This document shows positions 3,365 to 33,300 of a stretch of DNA of 36,666 bases, in pieces. The stretch's first letter is position 1. Every line of letters starts with the position of its first letter. Under the pieces are notes generated by a model. That model saw only the letters and a program-made list of their open reading frames with translations, had not been told where the DNA came from and ran no database searches. This stretch comes from Klebsormidium nitens (taxonomy: Eukaryota; Plantae; Klebsormidiophyceae). Where the stretch lies: contig DF237378.1 in assembly GCA_000708835.1 (NCBI GenBank), positions 1-36,666 of the forward strand, read 5' to 3'. The position numbers and the translations under genes are program-made.

Positions 3365-3454
3365 GCCCGCGTTTAGTCGATTCCGTACGGTACGGAACGA
3401 TTTCCGTACCGTACGGAATCGTTCCGTACCGTACGGAATCGACTAAACGCGGGC
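3365..3454. repeat. Near-perfect 90-bp palindrome (perfect 38-bp arms)
   Basis: 3365-3402 GCCCGCGTTTAGTCGATTCCGTACGGTACGGAACGATT is the exact reverse complement of 3417-3454. The loop (T-CCGTAC-C-GTACGG) is itself self-complementary. Confidence 0.95.
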
Positions 3455-9365: not shown

Positions 9366-10371
9366 AAAATCGAGAATTTCAATGAGTATAACATCTCTCT
9401 TCTGAAAGAGGCCTGAGGGACCGTTGAATAGGAACGGTATTAATGTACGAAGAAACCCTTCCATTGCTAATGCTGAAGAACAGGAAGGCGCGTCCAACGC
9501 TTTTAACGGACGGACTACCTAGCTGAATTTGGAAGGATCATTCTGGCGCGAAATGAAACAGTACCGTATCTCGAAGAGTAGTTCAAGCGACATGGGCCTT
9601 TGTAAGCTTGCACTTGATGAAGTCGTGGCTTACGTTTTTTCATTTTAATATATGAACTGACCAGTGATAGAACATTGGCTGGAGAGGACATCCTGCTTGC
9701 CCGCCGTATCTTATTTCTTCGATCACTCTTTCGCTTAAAAGATAGAGCGATCATGAAAGATATGATGATCAATCACAGACAACCTTCATTTCAGTACCGC
9801 TTCAGGCGAGTTTATGAACGACTCCACAATCTGCGCCGCATTCTTCGATCTTCATGGCCGCTATGACATGTCTGCCGTTCAAAGAAAAGCTGAGAGTCTT
9901 CTGCCAGCGAATCTCACAGCGTATCTGCAAAGTACGTGTCTGCGGAGGGCCGTCATTCATTTCGGAAGGCATGGGTGATTCAATTAACGCTTGAGCAGTG
10001 TGGGTGCGAATCGTTCGCTGATCTCAGAGAACAGAGCGACGTCGTGACTTCGATGCGAAGGATGAGACGTTGAAGTCACGAAGCTCTGCATACTCGAGAC
10101 GGTTGCCTCCTTTTAGCAAAGACAGACGGGAATCTCCTGACACCCTCCGTCGCTCACGAATCAGCACACAGTGGTGTAAAGAGGGCAGTCAGAAGTACCC
10201 GGTAGGAGCGTTCTGGCGGAAACCGCTGATTCAGGCTCGGAGCGGGAGGCCGGGAAATTTTCCGAATCGAAAGAACGGCCAGAAATCTCGACGCAGCGGC
10301 AAGGTAATGCAAAAGCTATTCAAACGAAGAGAGGATGCGAAACCAGGCATGGCAACATTACTGAGTCACCG

Positions 10372-11296
10372 CTGCTTCGGCTGCCGGCGTTCTTCAGCCG
10401 TGAAAGCTGCCTCCCTTAATCTGGCTTCAACGAAACCTCCGAATCTCAATGGTAACAAACCAACTCTTGTTGATCGCGAATTTTTGAAGCTTGGCTCGTT
10501 GACAAATTTCGAGATAGAAGAGGGCGACGACTCGCGGCCCGGCTCGGCTCTCTGGCAGCCGCCAACGTGAAACTCGCGCTCCGCGCGCTTACAAGTAGCC
10601 CGAGGTTTAATTTTCTCTAGGTTCAATCCAACCACGCGAATGTGCGGGCGCGTCGCAAGGGCCTCGGACCAGCCCGCGCGCGCGGCAAGCCGCGGGCCCA
10701 CTCCGCGGCAAAGTTTCGCTGCCGCCCCGAATGAAGTTGGTGCGGAGCCATACGAGAAGCGCGCTCGCGCATGAGCGCGCGAGCGCAATAGCGTGAACAC
10801 GCGAGCGCTCAAGCGCGCGAGCCTTAAGCGCGCAAGCGCTAGCGCAAGAGCGCGAGAGCTAGTGAGCCGCCGGTCCGATCGCAACAGCTACTTCGTCATA
10901 GCCGTGTCTGTTGAGGGGATTGGTCCCCTAGCTTTTGGCAAGGGAACCTTATCAACGACCAGAACGTTAGAGTTTCTTTGAATCCCGGCCAGTTTCAAGT
11001 CTAACAGCATCGAATCCCGACTGAAATTCTGAAGTTCCCCCATTCGAGTTGCAAGTTTCATCTTCGCACAAAGCTTGTTTCGAGTTTCAGGCGGCGTCAC
11101 TTTGATTCGCAATTCGAAGCGATATTTGGCGCAAACGCCATCCAGCCGTTCGCTCCCAGCCGGCTAAAGGACGTAGCCAGACCCGCGGAGATCTCCTCTT
11201 GAGACTACTTGACATATGAAAGCAGGAAGAACGCATGAAAAACGGCACAGCAATCCAAGCGGTTGCGATTAAGCAGGCCAAGTCGTAGAATTCTAA
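10372..11296 (+). repeat. 925-bp direct duplication, copy 1
   Basis: Begins CTGCTTCGGCTG and ends GTAGAATTCTAA; matches 14629-15553 (offset 4257). The ORF-track translations inside both copies are identical. Confidence 0.95.
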
Positions 11297-11606
11297 CACT
11301 ACTACCGTCCGGTGTCCTCAATTAGGGACAATGTACTCAATCGAGGACATAAAAAATGCAAACTTTGCCACGTCATTATCTCCGGCGCGGCCGCGGGTTT
11401 CAGGCGGTTTTAGGGCTTCAGTGGTAAGGGTTGGACCTCAGGACCTCGGCAAAAATCTAACTTCGGTCAAATTCGAAAGAAAACTTATTCTAGTTGCTGA
11501 GGTGTCCGGTGTGCTCATTTATCCTACAAACCTGCTCTTCTTTCGTCATTCAATTGTGTTCTTCACGTCCAAAAAGGCGCATAGGGGCAGAATGTTGTAG
11601 AGAACT

Positions 11607-11800
11607 ATGGCGTCTACATCTGGTCCATGCTTAGGTGATGTATTTCTGGTGAAGGCTGCCCATTTTGGTGAGGAGTGGGCTCAGTCTGAGTATGGGACTG
11701 CCTGGCCCTGGGTAACTTTAGCAGGCACTGTAACCAAGCAGAGGCCTGCAAAAGGGAAAACCCCAGAGAATGGGGGTTACTTTTTGAAGGAGATGAGACA
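11607..11800 (+). CDS. Probable frameshifted N-terminal extension of the transposase
   Basis: ORF MASTSGPCLGDVFLVKAAHFGEEWAQSEYGTAWPWVTLAGTVTKQRPAKGKTPE overlaps an open -1 frame reading WGLLFEGDET directly into MYWFSKLQ (11801). A single base restored near 11755-11775 fuses them. Confidence 0.5.
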
Positions 11801-13990
11801 ATGTACTGGTTTAGTAAGCTGCAACTGGCACAATATGTAAAGTCTCCCGAGCATAGGGTGTCGCCCGAGCTGCCTCAGTCTGAAGGGGGCAGCATGCATG
11901 CAGAGGCTGCCACAGAATTAGATCTGCGCACACCTGCGAGGAAGGGGAAGGAAAAAGTCACGGGGTTTGATGCTGCGGGCAGCCTCCCACCAGCCAGGCA
12001 GCTCCGCAGAAGCTCTGCAAACAAACCTTGGGGATACCGGGGTGAAGAAGATTCAGCAGGGGAGGAAGACGCTGTGTCAGAAGAGGTGGAAGAGGGCAGC
12101 CAGTCTGACGGGCAGGGCAGCCAGTCAGATGGCGACCCTGACAGCCAATCTGACAGTGAAGAGGAGGCTGCAGGGCCTGCCACAGCAGGGCCTGCCACAG
12201 GACAGAATCGGGGGCGTCCACCGGGCAAGCGAACCGTGGTTTTCCAGAAGCGGGCGGTGAAGCCCGCAGGGAGGAAGCGTGTGTCAAAGAAGCTGCTGGA
12301 AGGGGCGTCCAGCGGCAGCGAAGAGGAGGGGGAGAGCGATGAGGAGCTTGAGAAAGAGGGCGAGGGTCCGTTGGACAAGGGTTTGGAGGCGGGGCCCTCG
12401 GGGCCCATGCATTGGGAGCCGGTCGCGGAGGGGGATGTGCTGGAAGACGTGCAGCCCCCAGCATTCACGGGGCCCTCGCAGCGAGTAAGAAACCTTCCAG
12501 GTTTGCCCTCACTAACGCCGCTGCAGGTCTTCCTGTACCTTGTGCCTTTGGAATGGTTCAAGGATGTGGTGTTCCAGACCAATTTGTATGCGGCCGCGTG
12601 TCGGGAGGAGGCGGGGCTGCCTGGGAACAAGGGAAGGGTTTGGGTGAACGTGACGCTCCAGGAAGTGATGCGGTGGTTTGGGTTAGTGTTTGCTATGGCC
12701 CTGCATCCGTTGCCTGCTCTTGCCCACTATTGGAGGATCGGAGTTCAAGGGGCTGTCCGTTTACCGGGGTTTGGGGAGTTCATGTCCCTGAAGCGGTTTG
12801 AGCAAATCAAGCGGTACCTGCATACAAATGACAATGCCCAGAGACCCCCAGACAGAGCAACCCGGGAGTACAGGCTGTGGCACTTGATGCCGTTGCTAAA
12901 CCACATGGAAGAAACCTTCCCCCGGTTCTACAACCCAACTCAGTTTGTCACGTTCGATGAGCGGATGATCCCTTTGAGGAATCGGGGTTGTCCAGTCCGG
13001 GTCTACAACCCGAAGAAGCCCCACAAGTTTGGGGTGGAGCTTTTCTGTGCCGTTGATTCGGTCACATTCTATTGCTACTTCCAATGGGTTTACGACAAGG
13101 TCAAGGTCGAGGGGGACGGGTTGCACGACATGATCGTGCGAAAGCTGGGGGACCGTGTCCCCAAACACAGGGGGCACGTGATCATCCTAGATCGGGGGTT
13201 CACAGGCCCCCTGCCTGTTCGCGCTTTGAAGGAGGCGAACCTCCTTGCTACTGGCACGTGTCTCCCTAACCGGAAAATGTTTCCCAAAGAGTTGCTGCAG
13301 CTGGGAAGCAAGGCAGAACGGGGATCCATGAGGGCGGCAGTCTGTGAGGAGGACGGGATGGTGGCGGTGGCGTGGCAGGACAAGAAGCCGGTCTTCTTCC
13401 TGTCCACGTGTCACGGGTTGAGCCTCGGGGAGACGGGGCGGAGGGTTGCAGGCACGAGGGAGGAAGTGACCTGTCCGGAAATTGCGTACGAGTACAACAA
13501 GTTCAAGGACGGTGTCGATCAGTTCGACAAATCGTGCTTGATGGTGGGGTACGGTGGCGAGATGGAGCTCGTCTCCCGGAAGTGGTGGGTGCGGGTGATG
13601 TTCGGGTTACTGGACGGGGCGATGCACAACGCGTATGTGCTGTACCATGAGGCGCATCCGGAGGTGAGCCGCTGGGACTTCCTCCTCGCGCTGCAGCAGC
13701 AACTCGTGGAGAACACGTACGACAACCTCCCGGGGGCGAGGAAGCGGGGCCGGTCGGAGGGGGCCGGAACCGCAACAACGGGGTCGGATGACCGTGACGG
13801 GCACACCCTGGAGCGGGTGAAAGGGGCTTCCAACCGGTGCCGGGTTTGCTACGCTATGGACGGGAAGGCGGGCAGGAAGGTGAACATGAAGTGCGGGGCG
13901 TGCGGGGTGTTCCTGTGTCCGGGCGCGTGTGACCGGGATTGGCACACCCTCCCGGAGTTTGCGGGAACGAGAAAGAACTTGAGGGGCTAA
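11801..13990 (+). CDS. piggyBac-family DDD transposase (PGBD-like, DDE_Tnp_1_7) with C-terminal cysteine-rich domain
   Basis: 729-aa ORF with an acidic low-complexity N-terminus. Motifs: VTFDERMIP, YNPKKPHKFGVELFCAVD, IILDRGF, YNKFKDGVDQFD, RKWWVRVMFGLLDGAMHNAYVLY. C-terminal CRVC..CGACGVFLC..C...H zinc finger. Confidence 0.93.
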   Translation: MYWFSKLQLAQYVKSPEHRVSPELPQSEGGSMHAEAATELDLRTPARKGKEKVTGFDAAGSLPPARQLRRSSANKPWGYRGEEDSAGEEDAVSEEVEEGSQSDGQGSQSDGDPDSQSDSEEEAAGPATAGPATGQNRGRPPGKRTVVFQKRAVKPAGRKRVSKKLLEGASSGSEEEGESDEELEKEGEGPLDKGLEAGPSGPMHWEPVAEGDVLEDVQPPAFTGPSQRVRNLPGLPSLTPLQVFLYLVPLEWFKDVVFQTNLYAAACREEAGLPGNKGRVWVNVTLQEVMRWFGLVFAMALHPLPALAHYWRIGVQGAVRLPGFGEFMSLKRFEQIKRYLHTNDNAQRPPDRATREYRLWHLMPLLNHMEETFPRFYNPTQFVTFDERMIPLRNRGCPVRVYNPKKPHKFGVELFCAVDSVTFYCYFQWVYDKVKVEGDGLHDMIVRKLGDRVPKHRGHVIILDRGFTGPLPVRALKEANLLATGTCLPNRKMFPKELLQLGSKAERGSMRAAVCEEDGMVAVAWQDKKPVFFLSTCHGLSLGETGRRVAGTREEVTCPEIAYEYNKFKDGVDQFDKSCLMVGYGGEMELVSRKWWVRVMFGLLDGAMHNAYVLYHEAHPEVSRWDFLLALQQQLVENTYDNLPGARKRGRSEGAGTATTGSDDRDGHTLERVKGASNRCRVCYAMDGKAGRKVNMKCGACGVFLCPGACDRDWHTLPEFAGTRKNLRG

Positions 13991-14628
13991 TTGAGTTGGT
14001 AGAGCAAAATAGGCAGGAGAGAAGAGATCTGCGTAATTGGTCCAAGCCGAGCTTGTGTTGTATTTATTGCAACGCATCTGAGAGTTTGCGGCCGAAATTG
14101 AAGTATTGTGCTCGCAACTATGTGTCTTAAATAGGGTGTGCTTCATTGGCCGTACTTTGGATGTGTCGAGCATGTGTCAACGATGGAATTTGGGTCAACT
14201 GGCAAAACTGCGCAAAACTGGCAAACAGTGGCCCCGTGCACGCGTGACGTAAGACACACGATTTCTCGAATGTGGTGGCTACGTTCATATATAGTGTTCA
14301 TAAATCATGTTTAGGATGCCCGCCAATTTGCACGGCCATCTAAGTTGATTAGCTATTTAATGGAAGCCGATATATACAAAATGTCCTCGATTGAGGACAT
14401 TTCGCTGCTCCACGCATTTCCAGAAATTGCAGTTCGTCACGAAATGGAGAGGGTTTTGGTATCTAAACTAATCGGGTATAATATACAAGCCTAGCACCCG
14501 GTAGAGAAATGATAAAGTAAGCTCGAAACGAAAATCGGATGTCAAAATCCATGGTTTGCTATGGTTGGCATGTAATGCCATCATGTCCTTAATTGAGGAC
14601 AAAACTGGGACGGTAGTAGTGATACTAA

Positions 14629-15553
14629 CTGCTTCGGCTGCCGGCGTTCTTCAGCCGTGAAAGCTGCCTCCCTTAATCTGGCTTCAACGAAACCTCCGAA
14701 TCTCAATGGTAACAAACCAACTCTTGTTGATCGCGAATTTTTGAAGCTTGGCTCGTTGACAAATTTCGAGATAGAAGAGGGCGACGACTCGCGGCCCGGC
14801 TCGGCTCTCTGGCAGCCGCCAACGTGAAACTCGCGCTCCGCGCGCTTACAAGTAGCCCGAGGTTTAATTTTCTCTAGGTTCAATCCAACCACGCGAATGT
14901 GCGGGCGCGTCGCAAGGGCCTCGGACCAGCCCGCGCGCGCGGCAAGCCGCGGGCCCACTCCGCGGCAAAGTTTCGCTGCCGCCCCGAATGAAGTTGGTGC
15001 GGAGCCATACGAGAAGCGCGCTCGCGCATGAGCGCGCGAGCGCAATAGCGTGAACACGCGAGCGCTCAAGCGCGCGAGCCTTAAGCGCGCAAGCGCTAGC
15101 GCAAGAGCGCGAGAGCTAGTGAGCCGCCGGTCCGATCGCAACAGCTACTTCGTCATAGCCGTGTCTGTTGAGGGGATTGGTCCCCTAGCTTTTGGCAAGG
15201 GAACCTTATCAACGACCAGAACGTTAGAGTTTCTTTGAATCCCGGCCAGTTTCAAGTCTAACAGCATCGAATCCCGACTGAAATTCTGAAGTTCCCCCAT
15301 TCGAGTTGCAAGTTTCATCTTCGCACAAAGCTTGTTTCGAGTTTCAGGCGGCGTCACTTTGATTCGCAATTCGAAGCGATATTTGGCGCAAACGCCATCC
15401 AGCCGTTCGCTCCCAGCCGGCTAAAGGACGTAGCCAGACCCGCGGAGATCTCCTCTTGAGACTACTTGACATATGAAAGCAGGAAGAACGCATGAAAAAC
15501 GGCACAGCAATCCAAGCGGTTGCGATTAAGCAGGCCAAGTCGTAGAATTCTAA
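14629..15553 (+). repeat. 925-bp direct duplication, copy 2
   Basis: Same start and end as copy 1; separated from the transposon right end by ATACTAA. Confidence 0.95.
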
Positions 15554-16769
15554 GCAGACCAAATGCAGAATGTGATGCAAGTACACATCTTCACACCAGG
15601 GGGAAGCTGTACTGTCCAGGGGCAAGCTGTACTGTTATATGACGTGGCGGTCGGCAACAGTCGCACCTCGTAACCTTGCCGAGCCAACTAGATATGATCT
15701 CGACCATGCAGCCTGACGGAGCGGCAGTCGAGGTTATCCGTGCTTGTTCAGAAAAGGCTTTGTATTGTAGCAAGAACGATCGTCTAAATTCAAATGATCG
15801 AGCCCCTCGAATTCGATGCACGAGAAGCTGGTTAGACTCTGATGACTACTGGGATCTGAAATCCCTGCCGGCCGTCGAAGCTAGCAGTCTCGATTGGCCA
15901 AACGGCGTAACTTTGACCTGCTTGGTTTTCTTTGAAAGAGTCCTGAGCATGCGCAATGTTGATCGGCTTAGATATTATGGGGGCCGTACGATGCCAGGTT
16001 CGTGACACAAGTCCCTGCTCATGTCAGCCCCAGCATTCTTTCCAGGAAAAGTCTGGATCCCGCAGCCAGATTGTCGAGAAACGCGGCAAGCGAAGCTCAC
16101 TCCAATCATCCACGTCGCGCCCGGCAATGGATCAGGACTGTCTTAAAGGCACCAAGCCTCCCAAGTTCCACCCATTGAGAGTCAGTAAAAGACGCCGATC
16201 GACCTGCCATGCACGGCGCTTGTCGTCAAAAGTAGTGGGAGCAGCATCGAAGCAAACACGTCTCCCCGTAAACCCAGTGCTAAAAGCTTTGTCGGGGCCG
16301 GAAATTGTGACTTTCGACTCCTCTAAACTCGGCCGCATAGACAAAGGCCTATGCGGCCGGTCGGATAAGGCGTCTCATATATATACGGGCAGGTATTGAT
16401 GGGCTCTTTCACAGGGGCCAGCAATCATAGAAGAATAGAACTTGCCTCATTTGGGGGGCGATAAGTGTGCCAATGGCATGGCAAATTAAGGTCAATAAAG
16501 AGTGTGTGGGAAGTGAAGTTGCTTGGGGCCGGACGAGTTTGATTTTATCTCTAAAACATACAAGTGTACGTTGGTGCCTGTAACTCTAGCTTGCAGGTAA
16601 GGCGGCCACTTGTTGGACTCGAATATCGCTCCTGCCCTTGGAACTAGCCATGTCTGATCACTCTCGCAACTCTGAGCAAGCTCTAATGCCAAACATCGTG
16701 TTGCCTCATCTGAGAACCTTCCATCAATTTAGAAGCTCGAGCGGATCTTACATTTTGGGGCGCATATAT

Positions 16770-24800: not shown

Positions 24801-25423
24801 TTGTGGAAACGTTTTTCTACTTTCCGAACCGAAAGGCTTCGGCGTCATTCGAAAGGGAGGAAAGTAGAGGTGGTCGTTATGGGCACCCAATAATTGTCCA
24901 TCACCACCGCGAGCGCGTGTCACTCCTTCTTTAGATCACCAAGACCAGAATCACGATCAGCGAGAAGAAGGGCGATGCATGGGGTGGATGAGCTAGTGGA
25001 GTGTCCAGTGATTATATATGTACCTTATCAATTTTGACTTCCACTATTGGGTCGCTAAAAACGGTGGCGGCCCGGGGTTGCTCTCGGGTTGCAAACAGAC
25101 CGTCTCGGATCTCACACGTGTTTGTTTATTATCATCGACAACCACTTTTCATTGAAGCAACGAGGTGGAGGGGGGCCAAAACAAGAGCATGAACGACTCT
25201 CTATCGATCAGTGGCCGCAGGATGCAGCCAGCCTTGATTCCTCTTTGCCACACTGGCTTGAAGCTTTGCTCCGGTGCTTGAGCCTTTCGAAGCCTCCTCG
25301 TAGATGAGATAAAGGTTCAACATTGAAGCGGTGCGGATTCGCAAGGACCAAGTAACACAGGGAGCCTTGGCTTCTAACAGGAGCAAAACCAGGGCCAAAC
25401 CGAGGCGTTCCGCCCTGGAGAAT

Positions 25424-25486
25424 TGGCGGGCGAACCGGAGCTGAAGTGGCGCGCCGGACGCCCGTTCAGCTCCGGTTCGTCCGCCA
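25424..25486. repeat. Inverted repeat / stable hairpin
   Basis: 22-bp stem (25424-25445 / 25465-25486) with one G-T pair and a 19-nt loop; pairing extends imperfectly for about 8 more bp. Confidence 0.75.
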
Positions 25487-25911
25487 CTTTTCCGGAGCGG
25501 AACCTCCGCTTTGGCCCTGCTTCGATTGCTCCTTTTCTAAGCCAACTTGAAGTGGCACTGTGTAACCGGCGCCGCGGCTGGGCGGCCTTCTGCCCGCATG
25601 GGCTACGAATCACATTGAAAAAATACAATTTGCCGTAGCCGAGATACGGGCGAGACCGCCCTGGGCTCATTCTTACTTTCGTTCCTTCATCGCGCGTGGC
25701 GCCTTCTAGTGTTCTTCTCTTTGAGTATAGCTTTCTATTACGAATCACAAACCGTGGGAAGCAGTAGCAAAGACAATGAACTTATTTGATTGAGTCATGG
25801 AAGCGGCATCATTCTAGAAACCCACAGTGTTACGTGGCTTCGGTTAAGAGCCACGGGGACAACTTGATGCTCGTCATTGCCAATTGACTCACTGCAGTTT
25901 CTGTTAGAAGT

Positions 25912-26023
25912 NNNNNNNNNNNNNNNNNNNNNNNNNNNNNNNNNNNNNNNNNNNNNNNNNNNNNNNNNNNNNNNNNNNNNNNNNNNNNNNNNNNNNNNNN
26001 NNNNNNNNNNNNNNNNNNNNNNN
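25912..26023. other. Assembly gap (under-sized; hides most of the 5' LTR and the PBS)
   Basis: 112 Ns, whereas the sister LTR is 377 bp. Confidence 0.9.
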
Positions 26024-26112
26024 AGGGAAGGAATGAAGGGAAACGTGGAAGAAAGGAGAGGGGAATAAGCCTCCTTTGGTGAGGGCTTGAGCAAACCCTA
26101 AAAGTGTGCTCA

Positions 26113-27807
26113 ATGGCGGGTGTTGACAAACTCTCCTCGGCGGTGCCAAAGTTGAAGGGAGAGAATTGGGGAGTATGGAAAGACAAGATCCAAGCCCTCT
26201 TAGAGTTCAATGGGCTGTTTGTGGCAATTGAAGAGCCCGACACGGAAGAAGGGCGGAAGGCTTCCACAAAAGCAAAGGCGTTGATCAAGTTGTCCGTTGA
26301 GGATGCATTTGTGAAGCTCATTGCGGGGGAGACCACAGCAGCCGGGGCATGGAAGAAACTGAAGCAGAACTTTGAGAAAACCAGCAATGCGAGAGTGGTC
26401 CAGCTCACGGGGAAGCTGACCAACATGAAGCTTGGTGAAAAGCAGAGCATTGCTGAGTATTTGGGGGAGTTTCGGGAGATCAAGGTAGATCTGGAGGCGG
26501 CAGGGCAGACCATCTCAGATCTGCAGCTGACGGTGCATGCCTTGAAGGGGCTGCCTAAGGAGTATGAGACTCTCAGAGAGATTCTAGAGGCGGGAGACGA
26601 TGAGCTGAGCTTGGACATGGCGCAGCCAAAACTGATGCAGCGGGAGCAGAGGCTGCAAGGTGAGAGCACGCCTGCGCTGGCGGAGAGTGCAGATGGGGGG
26701 CAGGCGTCGGCCTTTGTGGCCAAGCACAGGCACTATGGGAGCTCAGGAGGGGGCAGGGGCAGCTCACGGGAGCATGCGGGTAGCTCAGACTCGCGGGGTT
26801 GTTACGGATGTGGCGAGAAGGGCCACATCAAGATGTACTGCAAGCACCGAAATGAGGACTGCGAGAACTGCGGCAAGCGGGGACACACAAAGGCGGTGTG
26901 CAGGCAGCCGGCAGGAAAAGGCGAGCGGGCATATGCGGCCAGGGAGGGAGCAGACGTGCGCGGCGTGGCGTTCACAGCGTGGCAAGGCAGCGCTGGAGCA
27001 CAGACGGGGGTCTGGCTGGTAGATTCTGGCAGCACGCAGCACATCACAGGTGATCGGGGCAAGTTCGTGAGCTACAGGAAGCTCGAACAGCCGGAGGTGA
27101 TTGAAGGGATCGGGGGAGAGCCCTTGACAGCGGTCGGAGTTGGGGTGGTCGAGCTGCAGTGTAGGACCCCAAGCGGAGTGGGCACAGTGACGTTGTACGA
27201 GGTGAGACACGTGCCCAAGGCGAGGGCAAACTTGTTTGCTCTGAGGAGGTCGACAGACGCAGGGGCGAGGGTGACCATTGAGGGGCGGGTCGCTCAGTTT
27301 GAGCTGGGCGGAGTTGTGTGCATGGAGGCGGAGGAGAAGAACGGCCTATGGGAAATCGCAATGGCCGGAGCAAAGCCGGAAGAGGGGGTGTGGGTGTTTG
27401 ATGAAACCCCTCGGTATTCGATGGACGGAGCGAAGAAGGCGCCGGCGGCGGCGCAAAAGAAGGCGCAAGCGGAAAGCGTGAAGGAGAAACGGGAGGAGCT
27501 CGTGGAGATTGAGCTCGAGTTTGACGAGGCCGGGGTAGAGCCTCAAGCGGAGAAAGTGAAGAGCAGGGCAACGGGGGAGCCGGTAGGAGCAAAGACCCCG
27601 GCAAACAAGGAGACGGGAAAGAAGAGGGGAACCCGGGCGGCGGCAACGGAAGCCGTGGAGATTGAGGAGATTGACCTCCGGGGGAGCAACTCGGAGAACG
27701 AGAAGACACCGGAGAAGAACGAGAAGCGGCGCTATCCGGAAAGAGTCCGGAAGCCGGCAACATGGCTCGAGGCGGCCAAAGCGACAAGGAGTGCGGAGAA
27801 GGGCTAG
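26113..27807 (+). CDS. Copia Gag-aspartic protease polyprotein lacking integrase, RT and RNase H
   Basis: 564-aa open frame. Copia gag N-terminus (LKGENWGVWKDKIQALLEFNGL; ESIAEY-like QSIAEYL; ALKGLPKEYE), two CCHC knuckles (CYGCGEKGHIKMYC, CENCGKRGHTKAVC), protease WLVDSGSTQHIT, then a charged linker ending RRYPERVRKPATWLE. Confidence 0.9.
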   Translation: MAGVDKLSSAVPKLKGENWGVWKDKIQALLEFNGLFVAIEEPDTEEGRKASTKAKALIKLSVEDAFVKLIAGETTAAGAWKKLKQNFEKTSNARVVQLTGKLTNMKLGEKQSIAEYLGEFREIKVDLEAAGQTISDLQLTVHALKGLPKEYETLREILEAGDDELSLDMAQPKLMQREQRLQGESTPALAESADGGQASAFVAKHRHYGSSGGGRGSSREHAGSSDSRGCYGCGEKGHIKMYCKHRNEDCENCGKRGHTKAVCRQPAGKGERAYAAREGADVRGVAFTAWQGSAGAQTGVWLVDSGSTQHITGDRGKFVSYRKLEQPEVIEGIGGEPLTAVGVGVVELQCRTPSGVGTVTLYEVRHVPKARANLFALRRSTDAGARVTIEGRVAQFELGGVVCMEAEEKNGLWEIAMAGAKPEEGVWVFDETPRYSMDGAKKAPAAAQKKAQAESVKEKREELVEIELEFDEAGVEPQAEKVKSRATGEPVGAKTPANKETGKKRGTRAAATEAVEIEEIDLRGSNSENEKTPEKNEKRRYPERVRKPATWLEAAKATRSAEKG

Positions 27808-28206: not shown

Positions 28207-30024
28207 GTTTCCGTAAACTTCAAAGCGGGACTTCCGCAGCCCAGACCGTGCTCCTTCCATGCAACAGTATCCCTCCCAAATGAAACAGGGAGGCTGTAAC
28301 AGGTTCCTAAAAATTAATGGCACGCATATCGTTTTTCCCTGTGCTCCGAATGCTCGCCGTGAATCTTGTGCATTTTACCCGCGAAGCAAATCAATGTGAC
28401 ATCAACTGGGCAGGTTTGGTTTGCTTTTCGATTCAAGGACGTCTTCAGGAATGTTTGGCATGGGTACAAAAGTCGGATGATGTACTGCTGATGACTGGAG
28501 GAAACGAAGTTCTGAGATTTGACACCGATTCTTTTTGAGTCTCAGCCAGATTCCGTGCTCTTACGGCCATGAATGCTGGTCAAGAGCAGTAGACGCATAA
28601 ATTCAGGCGAACCAACAAGAGAGTTGAGTACATGGGGCATCAAAAGTCCTAACGACTGTTGACATAAACCCTAGTCGTTTCTCTTGTCAGCATGATTGCC
28701 AAGCACTGCCAGTGCATCAGGCTCAAAAAAAGACACCTATGCTAGCGGAGTCCAGCAAAGGAGATACGCAAACATTCTATCAAGCTAGGAAGGCTTGGCT
28801 GGACACCCCCTAGCTTGAAAGTATTTGCCCACAAATCGGACGAATCAAGTCGAGTCCATGTTGCGGCAATGATTTAGGGACATTTTGTTGCAAATGGTAG
28901 TATTCGGGCCCACAACAAAAGGATATACACTTTGATGTTGCTGAACAGGAACCCCCAACAAGCCAGGATTTTGGAATGCATGGATTAATCCCAAAATTCA
29001 AGCTCGGCTAGAATTGAAAGCCTGATCTTGGTATTCTTCACGGTGTTAATCACAAGCTCGTAATCGTTACTTACTCTTGAATATACGAGGCTTAAGTCCA
29101 CCAGACTACCGGCACACGGCGATCATAGATGGCCACAAGCGGCTGCTTGGACTTCGATCTTTGCCTGCCGTAGTTTCATTCGAAGCGTCGTCTCCTCCTT
29201 CTTTCTTGATTTCAAAAACAATAATGGAGGAGCACGGAACCCACATTCTACTGATATGCACCTCTCATCAGCGATATTTCACACCCTTCACCTTCGGCGC
29301 GGGGCGTCTCTTAAAAGCTCGGCGCAGAAACAAATGTAATGATGTTATGCCGACGTTGAGATTTTCGGAATGGAGAGCGAGACTCGGATTGGAAAGGCCT
29401 ATGTGCGGAGCCGTGCCATGAGTGAGAGCAGCCAGTATCATGAGGGCACTATAAAGTAGCCTGTCTTATGTAGATATCCCGCTGACTTCAAGAGTGTAAG
29501 TATTTGCGACTTCGAGGTGAACTATGCAGCACGACCGAAACGCTGATCTTCCGAGTCGCTGCCTCTATGCAGGCAACAACCACTCCGCGTAGTCTCACCT
29601 CCTCTCGATGAGCAGAAGCAACCTTTTCGGAAAATGGGCTTTAAGCTGAAACTTGTGAAGAGACTCAAAGGAGACAGGGCGACTGCGGATTGCGGCCTGC
29701 GGCCTTGCTCATCGGCAGCATCCCTGCTCCGTTGCCCTACGCTTTCAACATCTCGGTCCTACCGATTCTGCGGATCCGCTTGAATTCAGTTCATTCAGTC
29801 GCCCAACGAGTGGCCGCGTTGCAAGTCAAAAGCTGGCATCGAAGACATCTGGAGTAGCGCGCGCGCGCCCCGCTGGACGAACGAGCATGTGGCTTCGCAG
29901 TCCGGTCGCCACTGCGGCCAGCGAGCGCCATAAGGCTCCTCAAGCACATCGCGTCCGACATGTGCTGTAGATTCATACACTAAGCGGGGCACGAACGCAA
30001 GCGCGCGAGTACGCGGAGACAGCT

Positions 30025-30355
30025 GCATGACGTCAGCATGCCCAATCCATTCTCCCCTTCACTGGCTGCAGATCGCAGCCAGCTTTAGTTTCTCATCGCC
30101 TCAGCTTCAAAAATTTTGAGATCTTCACGTCCGCCCAGCTTTTCCAAGCAATTAGGAGTTGACGTCTACGTACAGCGGATTAGAACGGCGTAGCAAAGAT
30201 TCTGTTTCTGATTTTGAGCAAGCCAAAAGCTTCATCGAGCGATAACCAGATTAGCATGCAAAGCACGGCCCTTTTGGAATCGCGCGTGCGTCTATGAAAC
30301 GATGCCGCACCAGAATTCAGCATTTGATGAACCGTTTCCAATCAGGAACCTAAGT
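30025..30355 (+). repeat. Diverged direct repeat, copy 1 (paralog at 32825-33300)
   Basis: Collinear shared blocks: GC.TGACGTCAGCATG; TGGCTGC(A/G)GAT(C/T)GC(A/G)GCCAG; TAGTT.CTCAT; AGCAA.CCAAA.GCTTCATC.AGCG; CGTCTA..TGAAA; CAGAATT; CAGGAACCTA.GT. Confidence 0.65.
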
Positions 30356-32824
30356 TGCAAGAGTCTTGGATGCAGCAAACAGAGCCATGCAAGATCCCGA
30401 AAAACATTGCATCGAAGTTAAGGACTTGAGTAACCAAAACGAGTGTCGACAAGCTGGCATCACTCTGTCTTGAGAGGACTGTGACGTGGCGGATCTGTTG
30501 TTTTGTAAACAGAAACTTCAGATCATTGTCATGATTTTATCGCCCAAGTACGAGTTGCGTTGAGGCGTGGTATTAGAAGCGGAAGGTTCAGGTGTCAAAG
30601 GATCGAACAGCTTTCTCTGGGGTCAGCAGCACGGAGGGAACGATTTTCTGATCCACAAAGCCTCCGGATAACTTTCGACCGCTCCGGATGGGTCCCCACG
30701 GGCTCACACACTTGGGTCTCACATCCGGCAAGCGCAAGCGCGCGCGCGAAAGCCTGACTCGTGCCGCGCCCCGATTGGCCGGCCACCCTAAAGACTGAGA
30801 GTGCCAGGTGCGCGTGTGCGCGTCTGCGGGTGCACAGACGTGATCGCCACGGATTCGCCGTGGGTATTTCAAACCCAACCGCTTGTGGGCCTCTGAGAGA
30901 TCTGTTTCGAGTTATTCGCCCGTCCTAGGCCTCCTCAAAATCACGGCGCGGGGTTCGGAACCAAATGGGTTTCAATCCGGCGCGGAATTGAATCCGCTCC
31001 AAAATGGGAGGGAATGCCAAAAACATCTGCGGGTCTAACCGAGTTTTGCGGGCTCTCATTTCAAGCGAAGTTGGGCGGTACGTTAATCCAGACGTGGTGA
31101 CAGAGCGAGGCGGCGTTAGACGACATGCTCGTATAGATTTGAAACGCGCGCGTCACTGTGCGGCCGCGCGCGCGGGTCAAATCCAGGCCGACGCCCGGGC
31201 TCTTGAGGTTCTCTTTTTTTGGGAGACGAGCGCGGCACAAAACTGTGCCGCAAGCCGCGGCCTCGACGAAAGACAAGCAATTCAAAGGTCGGGAGTTGCA
31301 GACGTTAATAACATACTTCTCTTTTCGTAATGACGTTCGTATGAGGATTCTTAGAAACTTATCGAATGACAATTGTTGGGATATGCAGCCACCCGGAAGA
31401 GGGAAAAAGCGCTGCAAATGGTGCGAACGGAGTGAGAAGAGGGAAGGCGCTTGAGCTTGAGGTGAAAACGCGCCAATGCTCAAAAGTCAAATTCGTCACT
31501 GCCTCGTTGCGGCCGCTCTTTGCTTTGTCACATAACGAGCGCGAGTGGAAACCACTCAGCATACAGCCTGATACCGACTCGCAGCGGAAGAAACCGGGAG
31601 AAATCGACGAATCCCGGGTCTGAACAGACGTACAGCGTACGCGAGGGTGTTTGCCAGAAACGCACGGCTCATTGCGCTTCCCGTCAGGTAGACTTAACAC
31701 CAAAGAATTTAAACGGGTTTAAAAAGCAAACTAATACAGTGTCGCGCTGAGCGTGCCATATTGTCGATCTCGCACACTCCGCCTCAATTTCTCCGGGCGC
31801 CTGCAAGTGATCATGAGGGCATCAGCCATTGACCAGCATTTCGCGCTGAAAGATTTCCAAAATTCTCACCCCGCTAGATATTTTTACCCATAAGCGGCTT
31901 TTGATCAGACCGACCGGCCCAGTTCACTCCTCATCGCCAACGCTCGGGTCTTTGCTCCTCACCGAAATTGCACGTAGGTTTGCAAGCAAACAGCAGGCCA
32001 GTCGACAATTATAGAAGGACGCGGAGCGATCTAACTGCCCTGCGCCCCTTGCGCAGAAGCGCGCGAGCACAAATTGTCCCGTCATGCAGGGCCGTACTAC
32101 TAAGGCGGGACATATTTCCCCCGACCCGGTCCTCGTGAACGCGGCGTCAGATGACCACCAAAGAGGAAGATGGGTGCGATTCCCACCCAGTAGTCCATCA
32201 TCACCGGGGTTCCGTGCTTTTTTCCTCGATCACTGTTTCACCACCTTACGATTCGTGCAATGCTCGTTTCAATTCCAGTTGCAGCAACTCTCGTATAACC
32301 CAGGCGAAATCCAGAATTTTTTACTGCCTGTACCCGGAACGTCCGTAAGCGTTTTCAATATCCTTGTTTTATGTGAATACTTTCAGCATTCAGACTTTAA
32401 TTGCTGGCTGCGGACAGTTAAGACGGGTGTACTACATCATTCACAGAAGAGGGAGCCGGTGACGACCTGGAAAGGGGCCGGGAACAACAGCGTGACGTCA
32501 GCACACCCTCCCCCCATTCACCGCAAATTGCAGCCAGGCTATTAGATTCTCATTGCCACTGCTTGAATCTTTGCCCCTGACTCGTCGCATGTCTGAGTCG
32601 TCACTCGTGGACGATCGATATTTGATGCAGTGTTTGTTTTTCTTCGACAGAAAACCGCGTCCGGCAGCTCGAGTGGGCTGTTATTAATCACAAGGAGAAT
32701 TTGGTGGCAGCATAGCAAGCCGGTGTGACGGCGGGGCGCGCCCCCATGAATGGAGCAGGAAGGTAGCACCAGAAAGGGAGCTACCCATTATGCATGGCTA
32801 AACAGAAATAGGGCGGATAAATTT

Positions 32825-33300
32825 GCGTGACGTCAGCATGAATCACAATGCAGCCGTTGGCTGCGGATTGCGGCCAGGCCTAGTTCCTCATGATCGCCTG
32901 CACAGCTTGACATCTTTCCGCAGCCTTTCATCGACCATAAAGAGACCGCATCGTAAAGTAAGAGGGCTTGTAAACTAGAGCGTGGTTGACTCTCGAGGAT
33001 AACATTTACAGCCGGCCGCTAGCTTGCTTAGTAATCAACCGTAGCCAAAAAGCAGCAGCATTTGGACCCCGGCTTGGCGCGCGCGGCTTCACGACAGCTT
33101 TTTGTTAACACATAGCAGATTAAAGCAGGAAAGTCCGTGACAAAGAAACCATTTTATTCAGCAACCAAAGGCTTCATCTAGCGTAAAGTTACCACGCTAA
33201 GCACCTGCCCGTCCAAAACAACATGAGTCGTCTACATGAAATGAAAGCGCCCCAGCTCCTCAGAATTATGATAGACTTTTGAGCAAACAGGAACCTAGGT
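32825..33300 (+). repeat. Diverged direct repeat, copy 2
   Basis: Same collinear blocks as 30025-30355, with about 145 bp of extra internal sequence. Confidence 0.65.

Follow-up and report, generated by a model that had tools for sequence, protein, structure and literature searches.

How a piggyBac-type transposon can come to lie between two identical copies of 925 bp of host DNA, instead of between the two copies of a short target-site duplication (TSD), is the question raised by a locus in the genome of the streptophyte alga Klebsormidium nitens. The locus is found on contig DF237378.1 of assembly GCA_000708835.1, within a stretch of 36,666 nucleotides (positions 1 to 36,666 of the forward strand) which was analysed as a whole and is referred to below as the window; the assembly was produced with Newbler from 454 and Illumina reads of K. 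nitens NIES-2285 (PMC4052687). The anatomy of the locus, the family to which the element belongs, the mismatch between the two flanks of the element and an intact CTAA at the downstream end of the duplicated segment are direct observations. The explanation which we favour, and to which we give an even chance of being correct, is a recent tandem duplication of the 925 bp of host DNA by aberrant transposition of the piggyBac type, involving either hybrid ends or a single end, with the product sealed by end joining.

Anatomy of the duplicated locus

The layout of the locus is X-A (925 bp)-element (3325 bp)-ATACTAA (7 nt)-A (925 bp)-B, where A is the duplicated host segment, X and B are the outer flanks, and the junction between the right end of the element and the second copy of A is called J2. 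Its parts are as follows:

10372..11296, no strand: copy 1 of host segment A, an exact match to 14629-15553
11297..14621, plus strand: piggyBac-superfamily transposon of 3325 bp, recognised by its terminal inverted repeats (TIRs), Pfam match and structure matches
14622..14628, no strand: filler ATACTAA at J2, the last 4 nt of which equal the CTAA of the left flank
14629..15553, no strand: copy 2 of host segment A, an exact match to copy 1

Base-by-base extension at an offset of 4257 found 10372-11296 and 14629-15553 to be identical at 925 of 925 positions with no mismatches, and this identity ends sharply at all four edges. An exact repeat of 925 bp cannot be of chance origin, and, with no differences in 925 bp, the rule of three would place the divergence between the two copies below approximately 0.3%, which agrees with the very recent event proposed when the locus was originally described from its sequence. 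The outer flanks are unique, with X ending in ...CACCG and B beginning with GCAGACC, and are unrelated to each other. When A and the element were compared by BLAST with the rest of the window (approximately 31 kb), no further copies of either were obtained above 14 nt, and no inverted repeat connecting X and B was found in the window by the same means. The whole structure is situated in a gap-free stretch, the closest runs of N being those at 25912 and 33458.

The arrangement given in that original prediction, i.e., identical repeats of 925 bp, an element of 3325 bp, 7 additional bp and unique outer flanks, is therefore right to the base. The same can be said of the claim that the boundary of the duplication coincides with the ends of the element, given that copy 1 abuts the left TIR and copy 2 begins 7 nt past the right one.

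The inner element

The features by which the element can be classified are the following:

11297..11310, plus strand: left TIR, beginning with CAC, a perfect 14/14 match with the right TIR
14608..14621, minus strand: right TIR, with terminal G (GTG), the perfect partner of the left TIR
11313..11349, no strand: two adjoining 18-bp palindromes, at element positions 17-34 and 36-53
14382-14399 and 14584-14601, no strand: two more copies of the 18-bp palindrome (same motif), near the right end
11801..13990, plus strand: main transposase open reading frame (ORF), 729 aa
11607..11765, plus strand: conserved N-terminal coding segment (approximately 58 aa in relatives), one base out of the frame of the main ORF

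Judged by its sequence, the inner element is a piggyBac-superfamily transposon, as had been predicted. The 729-aa ORF matches the Pfam family DDE_Tnp_1_7 (PF13843) with an E-value of 1.2e-52 over the full 349-position profile, and also matches solved structures, namely those of piggyBat (9c0f, 2.3e-29) and of T. ni piggyBac (6x67, 1.5e-18). Residues D386, D464 and D573 are placed by the HMMER alignment within the catalytic motifs of 6x67 and 9c0f, and among 11 relatives D386 is invariant while D464 and D573 are nearly so; by motif recognition, these residues are assigned to the DDD triad of piggyBac, numbered D268/D346/D447 in that protein (PMC5381638). In the C-terminal region the cysteines line up with the piggyBat cysteine-rich domain (CRD), Pfam zf-Tnp_2 scoring 16.9 bits, under its 24-bit cut-off.

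The termini point in the same direction. According to a survey of 157 piggyBac-like elements, TIRs in this superfamily are 12-19 bp long, have C[C/A/T][C/A/T] as their first bases and conserve the terminal C/G, which has a role in the choice of cleavage site (PMC5381638), and the TIR described here (14 bp, CAC start, G end) fits this rule. It has only two matches in the 36.7-kb window, both at the ends of the element, with 0.1 expected by chance, while the 18-bp palindrome has four, all subterminal in the element, vs. 0.01 expected. Since in T. ni piggyBac a palindrome at bp 17-33 is bound by the CRD (PMC7351741), the subterminal palindromes are probably, by analogy, binding sites for the CRD of the transposase. 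Because the terminal G is conserved, and because the TIR rule and the position of the palindromes agree with it, the element is taken to be 11297-14621, with the trinucleotide ATA that follows lying outside it.

The N-terminal part of the transposase is less straightforward. In tblastn comparisons with the relatives P0003, P0004 and P0006, the conserved N-terminal segment, whose approximately 58 residues are encoded at 11613-11765 and for which no Pfam match was found, is read in frame 2 and then in frame 1, the switch occurring within a homopolymer-rich stretch near 11749-11765. This one-base break may reflect either a true shift of frame or a 454 sequencing error in a homopolymer; if it were removed, the transposase would have approximately the length of its relatives (748-791 aa).

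The closest database protein, P0001, is annotated as 'transposase [Klebsormidium nitens]' and corresponds to the gene model of NCBI for the locus described here, differing from it only by a predicted 26-aa intron. That intron corresponds to ORF residues 229-254 (approximately 12485-12562) and is probably an annotation error, as these residues align well with the paralogue P0004 and sit at the start of the Pfam domain. In the protein database search nothing but P0001 exceeded 90% identity, and the K. nitens paralogue that came next reached 52%; on this evidence the element is apparently single-copy, and there are therefore no sister copies with which it could be compared. No close metagenomic relatives were obtained with a profile of 11 relatives either: identity did not exceed 35% in any of the 71 loci that the search yielded, from which the termini and target site of the family are not definable.

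Outside Klebsormidium-like sequences, the nearest named relatives (P0012-P0014) belong to the ferns Adiantum capillus-veneris and A. nelumboides, at 32-33% identity. A survey published in 2017 described the piggyBac superfamily as present in eukaryotes 'except in plants' (PMC5381638), and a streptophyte piggyBac lineage may therefore merit attention.

Junctions and flanks

The short sequences at the edges of A are, in addition to the filler listed above:

11293..11296, no strand: left flank CTAA, the last 4 nt of A, a TTAA-like variant target
10363..10380, no strand: edge between X and A (...CACCG followed by CTGC...), read from the sequence
15550..15560, no strand: junction between A and B, ...CTAA followed by GCAGACC, with an intact CTAA

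At the left junction, copy 1 ends in ...TTCTAA and directly abuts the left TIR. CTAA/TTAG is a documented minor target of piggyBac, TTAA-like variants being used in a few per cent of T. ni piggyBac insertions (PMC3064801; PMC3983033). The tetranucleotide that flanks the element on the right is ATAC, unlike the CTAA on the left, and a matching TTAA target-site duplication, or any other matching 4-bp TSD, is thus missing, as the original prediction had stated. Because CTAA and ATAC form no TSD, J2 is not an ordinary insertion junction, and we read the mismatch as a sign of a rearranged right junction and not of a different transposon family.

The 7-nt filler, whose last four nucleotides had been said to repeat the left flank, can be read directly at 14622-14628 and does so. 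No template for it was found within the window: its match to the last 7 nt of A, at 6 of 7 positions, contributes little beyond the CTAA itself (estimated p ~0.16), and a 5-nt match to the TIR is within chance.

The edge between X and A reads ...GAGTCACCG followed by CTGCTTCGG..., and no TTAA-like site, or even a TA, is present there between 10363 and 10380, which makes it unlikely that a second element was once located at this position. There is likewise no microhomology between this edge and either the end of A or the filler, and no tetranucleotide is common to the filler and the edge. A template-switch origin, by replication-fork stalling with a switch of template (FoSTeS) or microhomology-mediated break-induced replication (MMBIR), was considered and is disfavoured, because the junction of the duplication is without microhomology. 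The junction between A and B, where CTAA is intact, has the sequence expected of a piggyBac site that is unoccupied or has been seamlessly vacated.

Proposed mechanism

The chemistry of piggyBac offers a way in which such a structure might arise. Excision begins with a 3' nick at the end of the element, followed by formation of a hairpin through attack on the flank 4 nt out; once the hairpin is reopened, the element end carries the four bases of the flank as a 5' overhang, and the complementary overhangs on the donor flanks re-ligate without a scar, no particular flank being needed for excision (PMC7351741).

On the reading that we favour, the element would first have inserted normally at CTAA between A and B. 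After replication, its right end would have been cut on one sister chromatid and, in the one-step version, its left end on the other, where the vacated flanks would have re-ligated seamlessly to give A-CTAA-B. The freed right end, still joined to X-A-element, would then have been attached 925 bp upstream, at the edge between X and A of the other chromatid, where end joining by the host, and not an orderly strand transfer, would have sealed it, leaving the 7-nt filler. The product would be X-A-element-filler-A-B, together with a reciprocal chromatid without A, which would since have been lost. In a two-step variant, the cut right end would join the sister chromatid and the second copy of the element would later excise seamlessly, resulting in the same final sequence. 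It is the lack of a TTAA-like site upstream, together with the presence of the filler, that leads us to infer end joining at J2.

Several observations support this reading. One edge of the repeat meets the left terminus of the element to the base and the other lies 7 nt from the right terminus, and the involvement of the transposase is the most economical reading of such coinciding boundaries. The filler ends in CTAA, i.e., in the same four nucleotides that, by the chemistry described above (PMC7351741), would be carried as a 5' overhang on the excised end. The CTAA between A and B is unscarred, as it would be after seamless rejoining, and the element, as a member of the piggyBac family, has intact TIRs, subterminal palindromes and a predicted catalytic triad.

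Other observations weigh against it. The case consists of one locus, in a draft assembled by Newbler from 454/Illumina reads; the new junction is not at TTAA, and neither a reciprocal product nor an allele with the simple insertion is known. The ATA between the terminal G and CTAA fits no version of the model, as a filled-in overhang would place CTAA right after the terminus. The out-of-frame N-terminus may also mean that this copy is not fully autonomous, though a 454 homopolymer error would explain it equally well. With regard to the original proposal of a transposase-driven duplication, the link to the transposase can be retained as the most economical reading, but the new junction resembles end joining and not the strand transfer of a transposase. 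It is put forward as a tentative possibility, at clearly less than an even chance, that a member of the piggyBac superfamily, transposing by hybrid ends (from sister chromatids) or by a single end, left this locus as a natural footprint in a streptophyte alga.

Alternative explanations

One alternative to a genuine duplication is an artefact of assembly or topology. The 454/Illumina reads of that era, assembled with Newbler, are too short to cover an exact repeat of 925 bp, and the assembler therefore had to resolve a graph loop at A; all junctions could be present in the reads while the genome itself consisted of X-A-B plus a circle of A and the element, of an (A-element)n array or of the mixed genomes of a heterogeneous culture, or J2 could be chimeric. 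Neither a circle nor a longer array would differ from the observed structure in its four junctions, exact identity would also result from the double placement of a collapsed repeat, and an ORF which crosses J2 has no counterpart in any other assembly, the protein database search having returned no hits. Against this, the region is gap-free, and the unique 7-nt filler of J2, with A starting at an otherwise featureless position, is not something that an ordinary overlap error makes; a circle or an array, for its part, would equally need the right end of the element to be joined to the start of A. We consider an artefact of this kind rather unlikely. Two separate events, in which the host produced an A-A tandem and the element afterwards inserted by chance at the CTAA ending the first copy, would with CTAA as the TSD predict A-element-CTAA-A, which is near to what is observed, and coincidences are to be expected when very many windows are scanned. 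Such a history nevertheless requires an apparently single-copy element to strike exactly the one junction site, and it predicts CTAA right after the terminal G, where ATA intervenes; as the terminal G is conserved in the superfamily (PMC5381638), ATA probably does not belong to the element, and this sequence of events is quite improbable.

The duplication could also be regarded as a giant target-site duplication, produced when the ends of an incoming element were joined to opposite strands 925 bp apart, through uncoupled strand transfers or capture between filled-in staggered nicks, with gap filling then doubling A. The polarity of the locus, with the left end downstream and the right end upstream, would be that of a normal 5'-staggered insertion, and the left end is at a legitimate CTAA target. 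The upstream site, however, is not TTAA-like, the CTAA of the filler would have to equal the new left target by chance (approximately 1 in 256), and no piggyBac precedent for a stagger of this size was found in the literature searched, so that we see only a slim chance for this explanation. It is hardly credible, and rejected on anatomy, that A is a long terminal repeat (LTR) or multicopy repeat and the 5.2 kb one composite mobile unit: the identical direct repeats around a coding core look superficially LTR-like, but they have no TG...CA ends (A begins with CTGC and ends with CTAA), there is no flanking duplication around the 5.2 kb, no reverse transcriptase and no integrase, the core carries TIRs and a DDE transposase of its own, and neither another A in the 31 kb of flank nor an inverted repeat linking X and B is present. 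Unequal exchange involving two insertions, with seamless excisions afterwards, predicts a TTAA-like site between X and A and no filler; neither holds, and the precedent of unequal exchange that was cited originally is contradicted by the locus.

Content of segment A and other features of the window

Segment A is non-coding and has a GC-rich core with short GCGC-type repeats. A 23-nt GCGC-rich, partly palindromic motif occurs three times in it at a spacing of 37-38 bp (10758-10859, and again in copy 2 at 15015-15116); this motif is low-complexity sequence and the source of the CpG-rich appearance of A. The suggestion that A resembles a CpG island and may contain a promoter finds no support. The observed/expected ratio for CpG is 1.35 in A but 0.98 over the whole window, from which it follows that the host genome is not CpG-depleted, and the ratio for GpC in A is 1.49, this equal enrichment being due to the GCGC-type low-complexity repeats. 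With CpG and GpC raised alike, the CpG-island or promoter reading was rejected as uninformative. No Pfam domains were found in the ORFs of A, and no genes, Pfam domains, tRNA or Rfam families were found in or beside it, the tRNA and Rfam scans being empty.

Further features were observed elsewhere in the window:

3365-3454: hairpin-type inverted repeat with 38-nt arms, 100% complementary, and a 14-nt loop
18533-18847, plus strand: 104-aa ORF resembling a single-RRM glycine-rich RNA-binding protein
25407-25503: hairpin-type inverted repeat with 45-nt arms, 84% complementary, and a 7-nt loop
26104-27807, plus strand: ORF with Copia-type gag and Pol beta-barrel domains (Pfam, 7.7e-30 and 1.9e-17)
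30005-30038, 32470-32503 and 32805-32838: three occurrences of a 34-nt motif, each ending in the palindrome TGACGTCA (bZIP/CRE-like)

Within 5 kb of the duplication, no clear host-type coding sequence other than that of the putative RRM protein was seen. The ORF at 26104-27807 is a fragment of a Ty1/Copia retrotransposon; the stretch in which it lies is strongly skewed towards purines, and an N gap (25912-26023) immediately precedes it.

Significance

Duplication of flanking DNA driven by transposons is established for P elements and for Ac/Ds (PMC3744419), and such duplications constitute one proposed route to new gene copies. In the searchable literature, no natural genomic duplication ascribed to an element of the piggyBac family was found. 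PiggyBac is valued for its seamless excision. If the reading favoured here is true, this supposedly 'seamless' chemistry, like that of P and Ac, can also give rise in nature to segmental duplications of the host's DNA; a case that had been verified would bring a third superfamily, as well as the streptophyte lineage, within the range of alternative transposition, and would bear on the safety of piggyBac vectors. The locus, one case involving non-coding DNA, is best filed as a candidate instance, from the piggyBac superfamily, of known transposon-induced flanking duplication.

Comparison with known systems

With T. ni piggyBac and Myotis piggyBat the element shares the DDE_Tnp_1_7 core, the DDD triad and 14-bp TIRs with terminal C...G, and its left-end palindrome occupies bp 17-34, compared with bp 17-33 in T. 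ni. Unlike canonical piggyBac, it has no TTAA on either side and its two flanks differ, its host is a streptophyte alga, and its lineage possesses an extra conserved N-terminal segment without a Pfam match.

Aberrant reactions are known for T. ni piggyBac in cultured cells, where single-ended and bimolecular pseudo-transposition is approximately eight-fold commoner than with Sleeping Beauty (Wang et al. 2014, PMC3952818). These reactions are catalysed within the same superfamily and resemble the one proposed here in that one end attacks nearby DNA while the other stays attached, or the ends come from separate molecules; they differ in that they involved plasmids and TTAA targets, no genomic duplication being described, whereas the target at this locus is not TTAA-like.

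Alternative transposition of Ac/Ds (Zhang, Zuo and Peterson 2013, PMC3744419) similarly produces tandem direct duplications ending at transposon termini and, as in the model proposed here, takes place while the DNA is replicating or afterwards, with the sister chromatid as the target of insertion. Reversed-ends transposition (RET) of Ac, which the original prediction had named, depends on two elements, and its product is element-A-element-A with an 8-bp TSD in common (PMC3744419), so that each repeat is initiated by an element and the TSD marks the event. The locus described here does not conform to this: there is one element, with only two TIR matches in 36.7 kb, no second terminus or fractured second end is present, and no TSD is shared.

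Hybrid element insertion (HEI) of the Drosophila P element, which is cited as a source of flanking rearrangements (PMC3744419), offers the better parallel. In HEI one element is kept at the old junction while the adjoining host DNA is tandemly duplicated, the ends taking part come from two sister chromatids, and a duplication is expected to be matched by a reciprocal deletion, all of which apply to the proposed model as well. That a single element is retained is reported in the work of Preston and Engels and of Gray and Sved from 1996. At this locus a single element stands at the joint of its own duplicated flank with the old left junction unchanged, as in HEI, but strand transfer at a normal target is not seen, the edge between X and A having no TTAA-like site and J2 carrying the 7-nt filler. 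The superfamily and the chemistry are also different, and the new junction formed in HEI has a regular 8-bp TSD. The locus would thus work like HEI while falling outside HEI in the strict sense, and it is closer to HEI than to reversed-end transposition of Ac.

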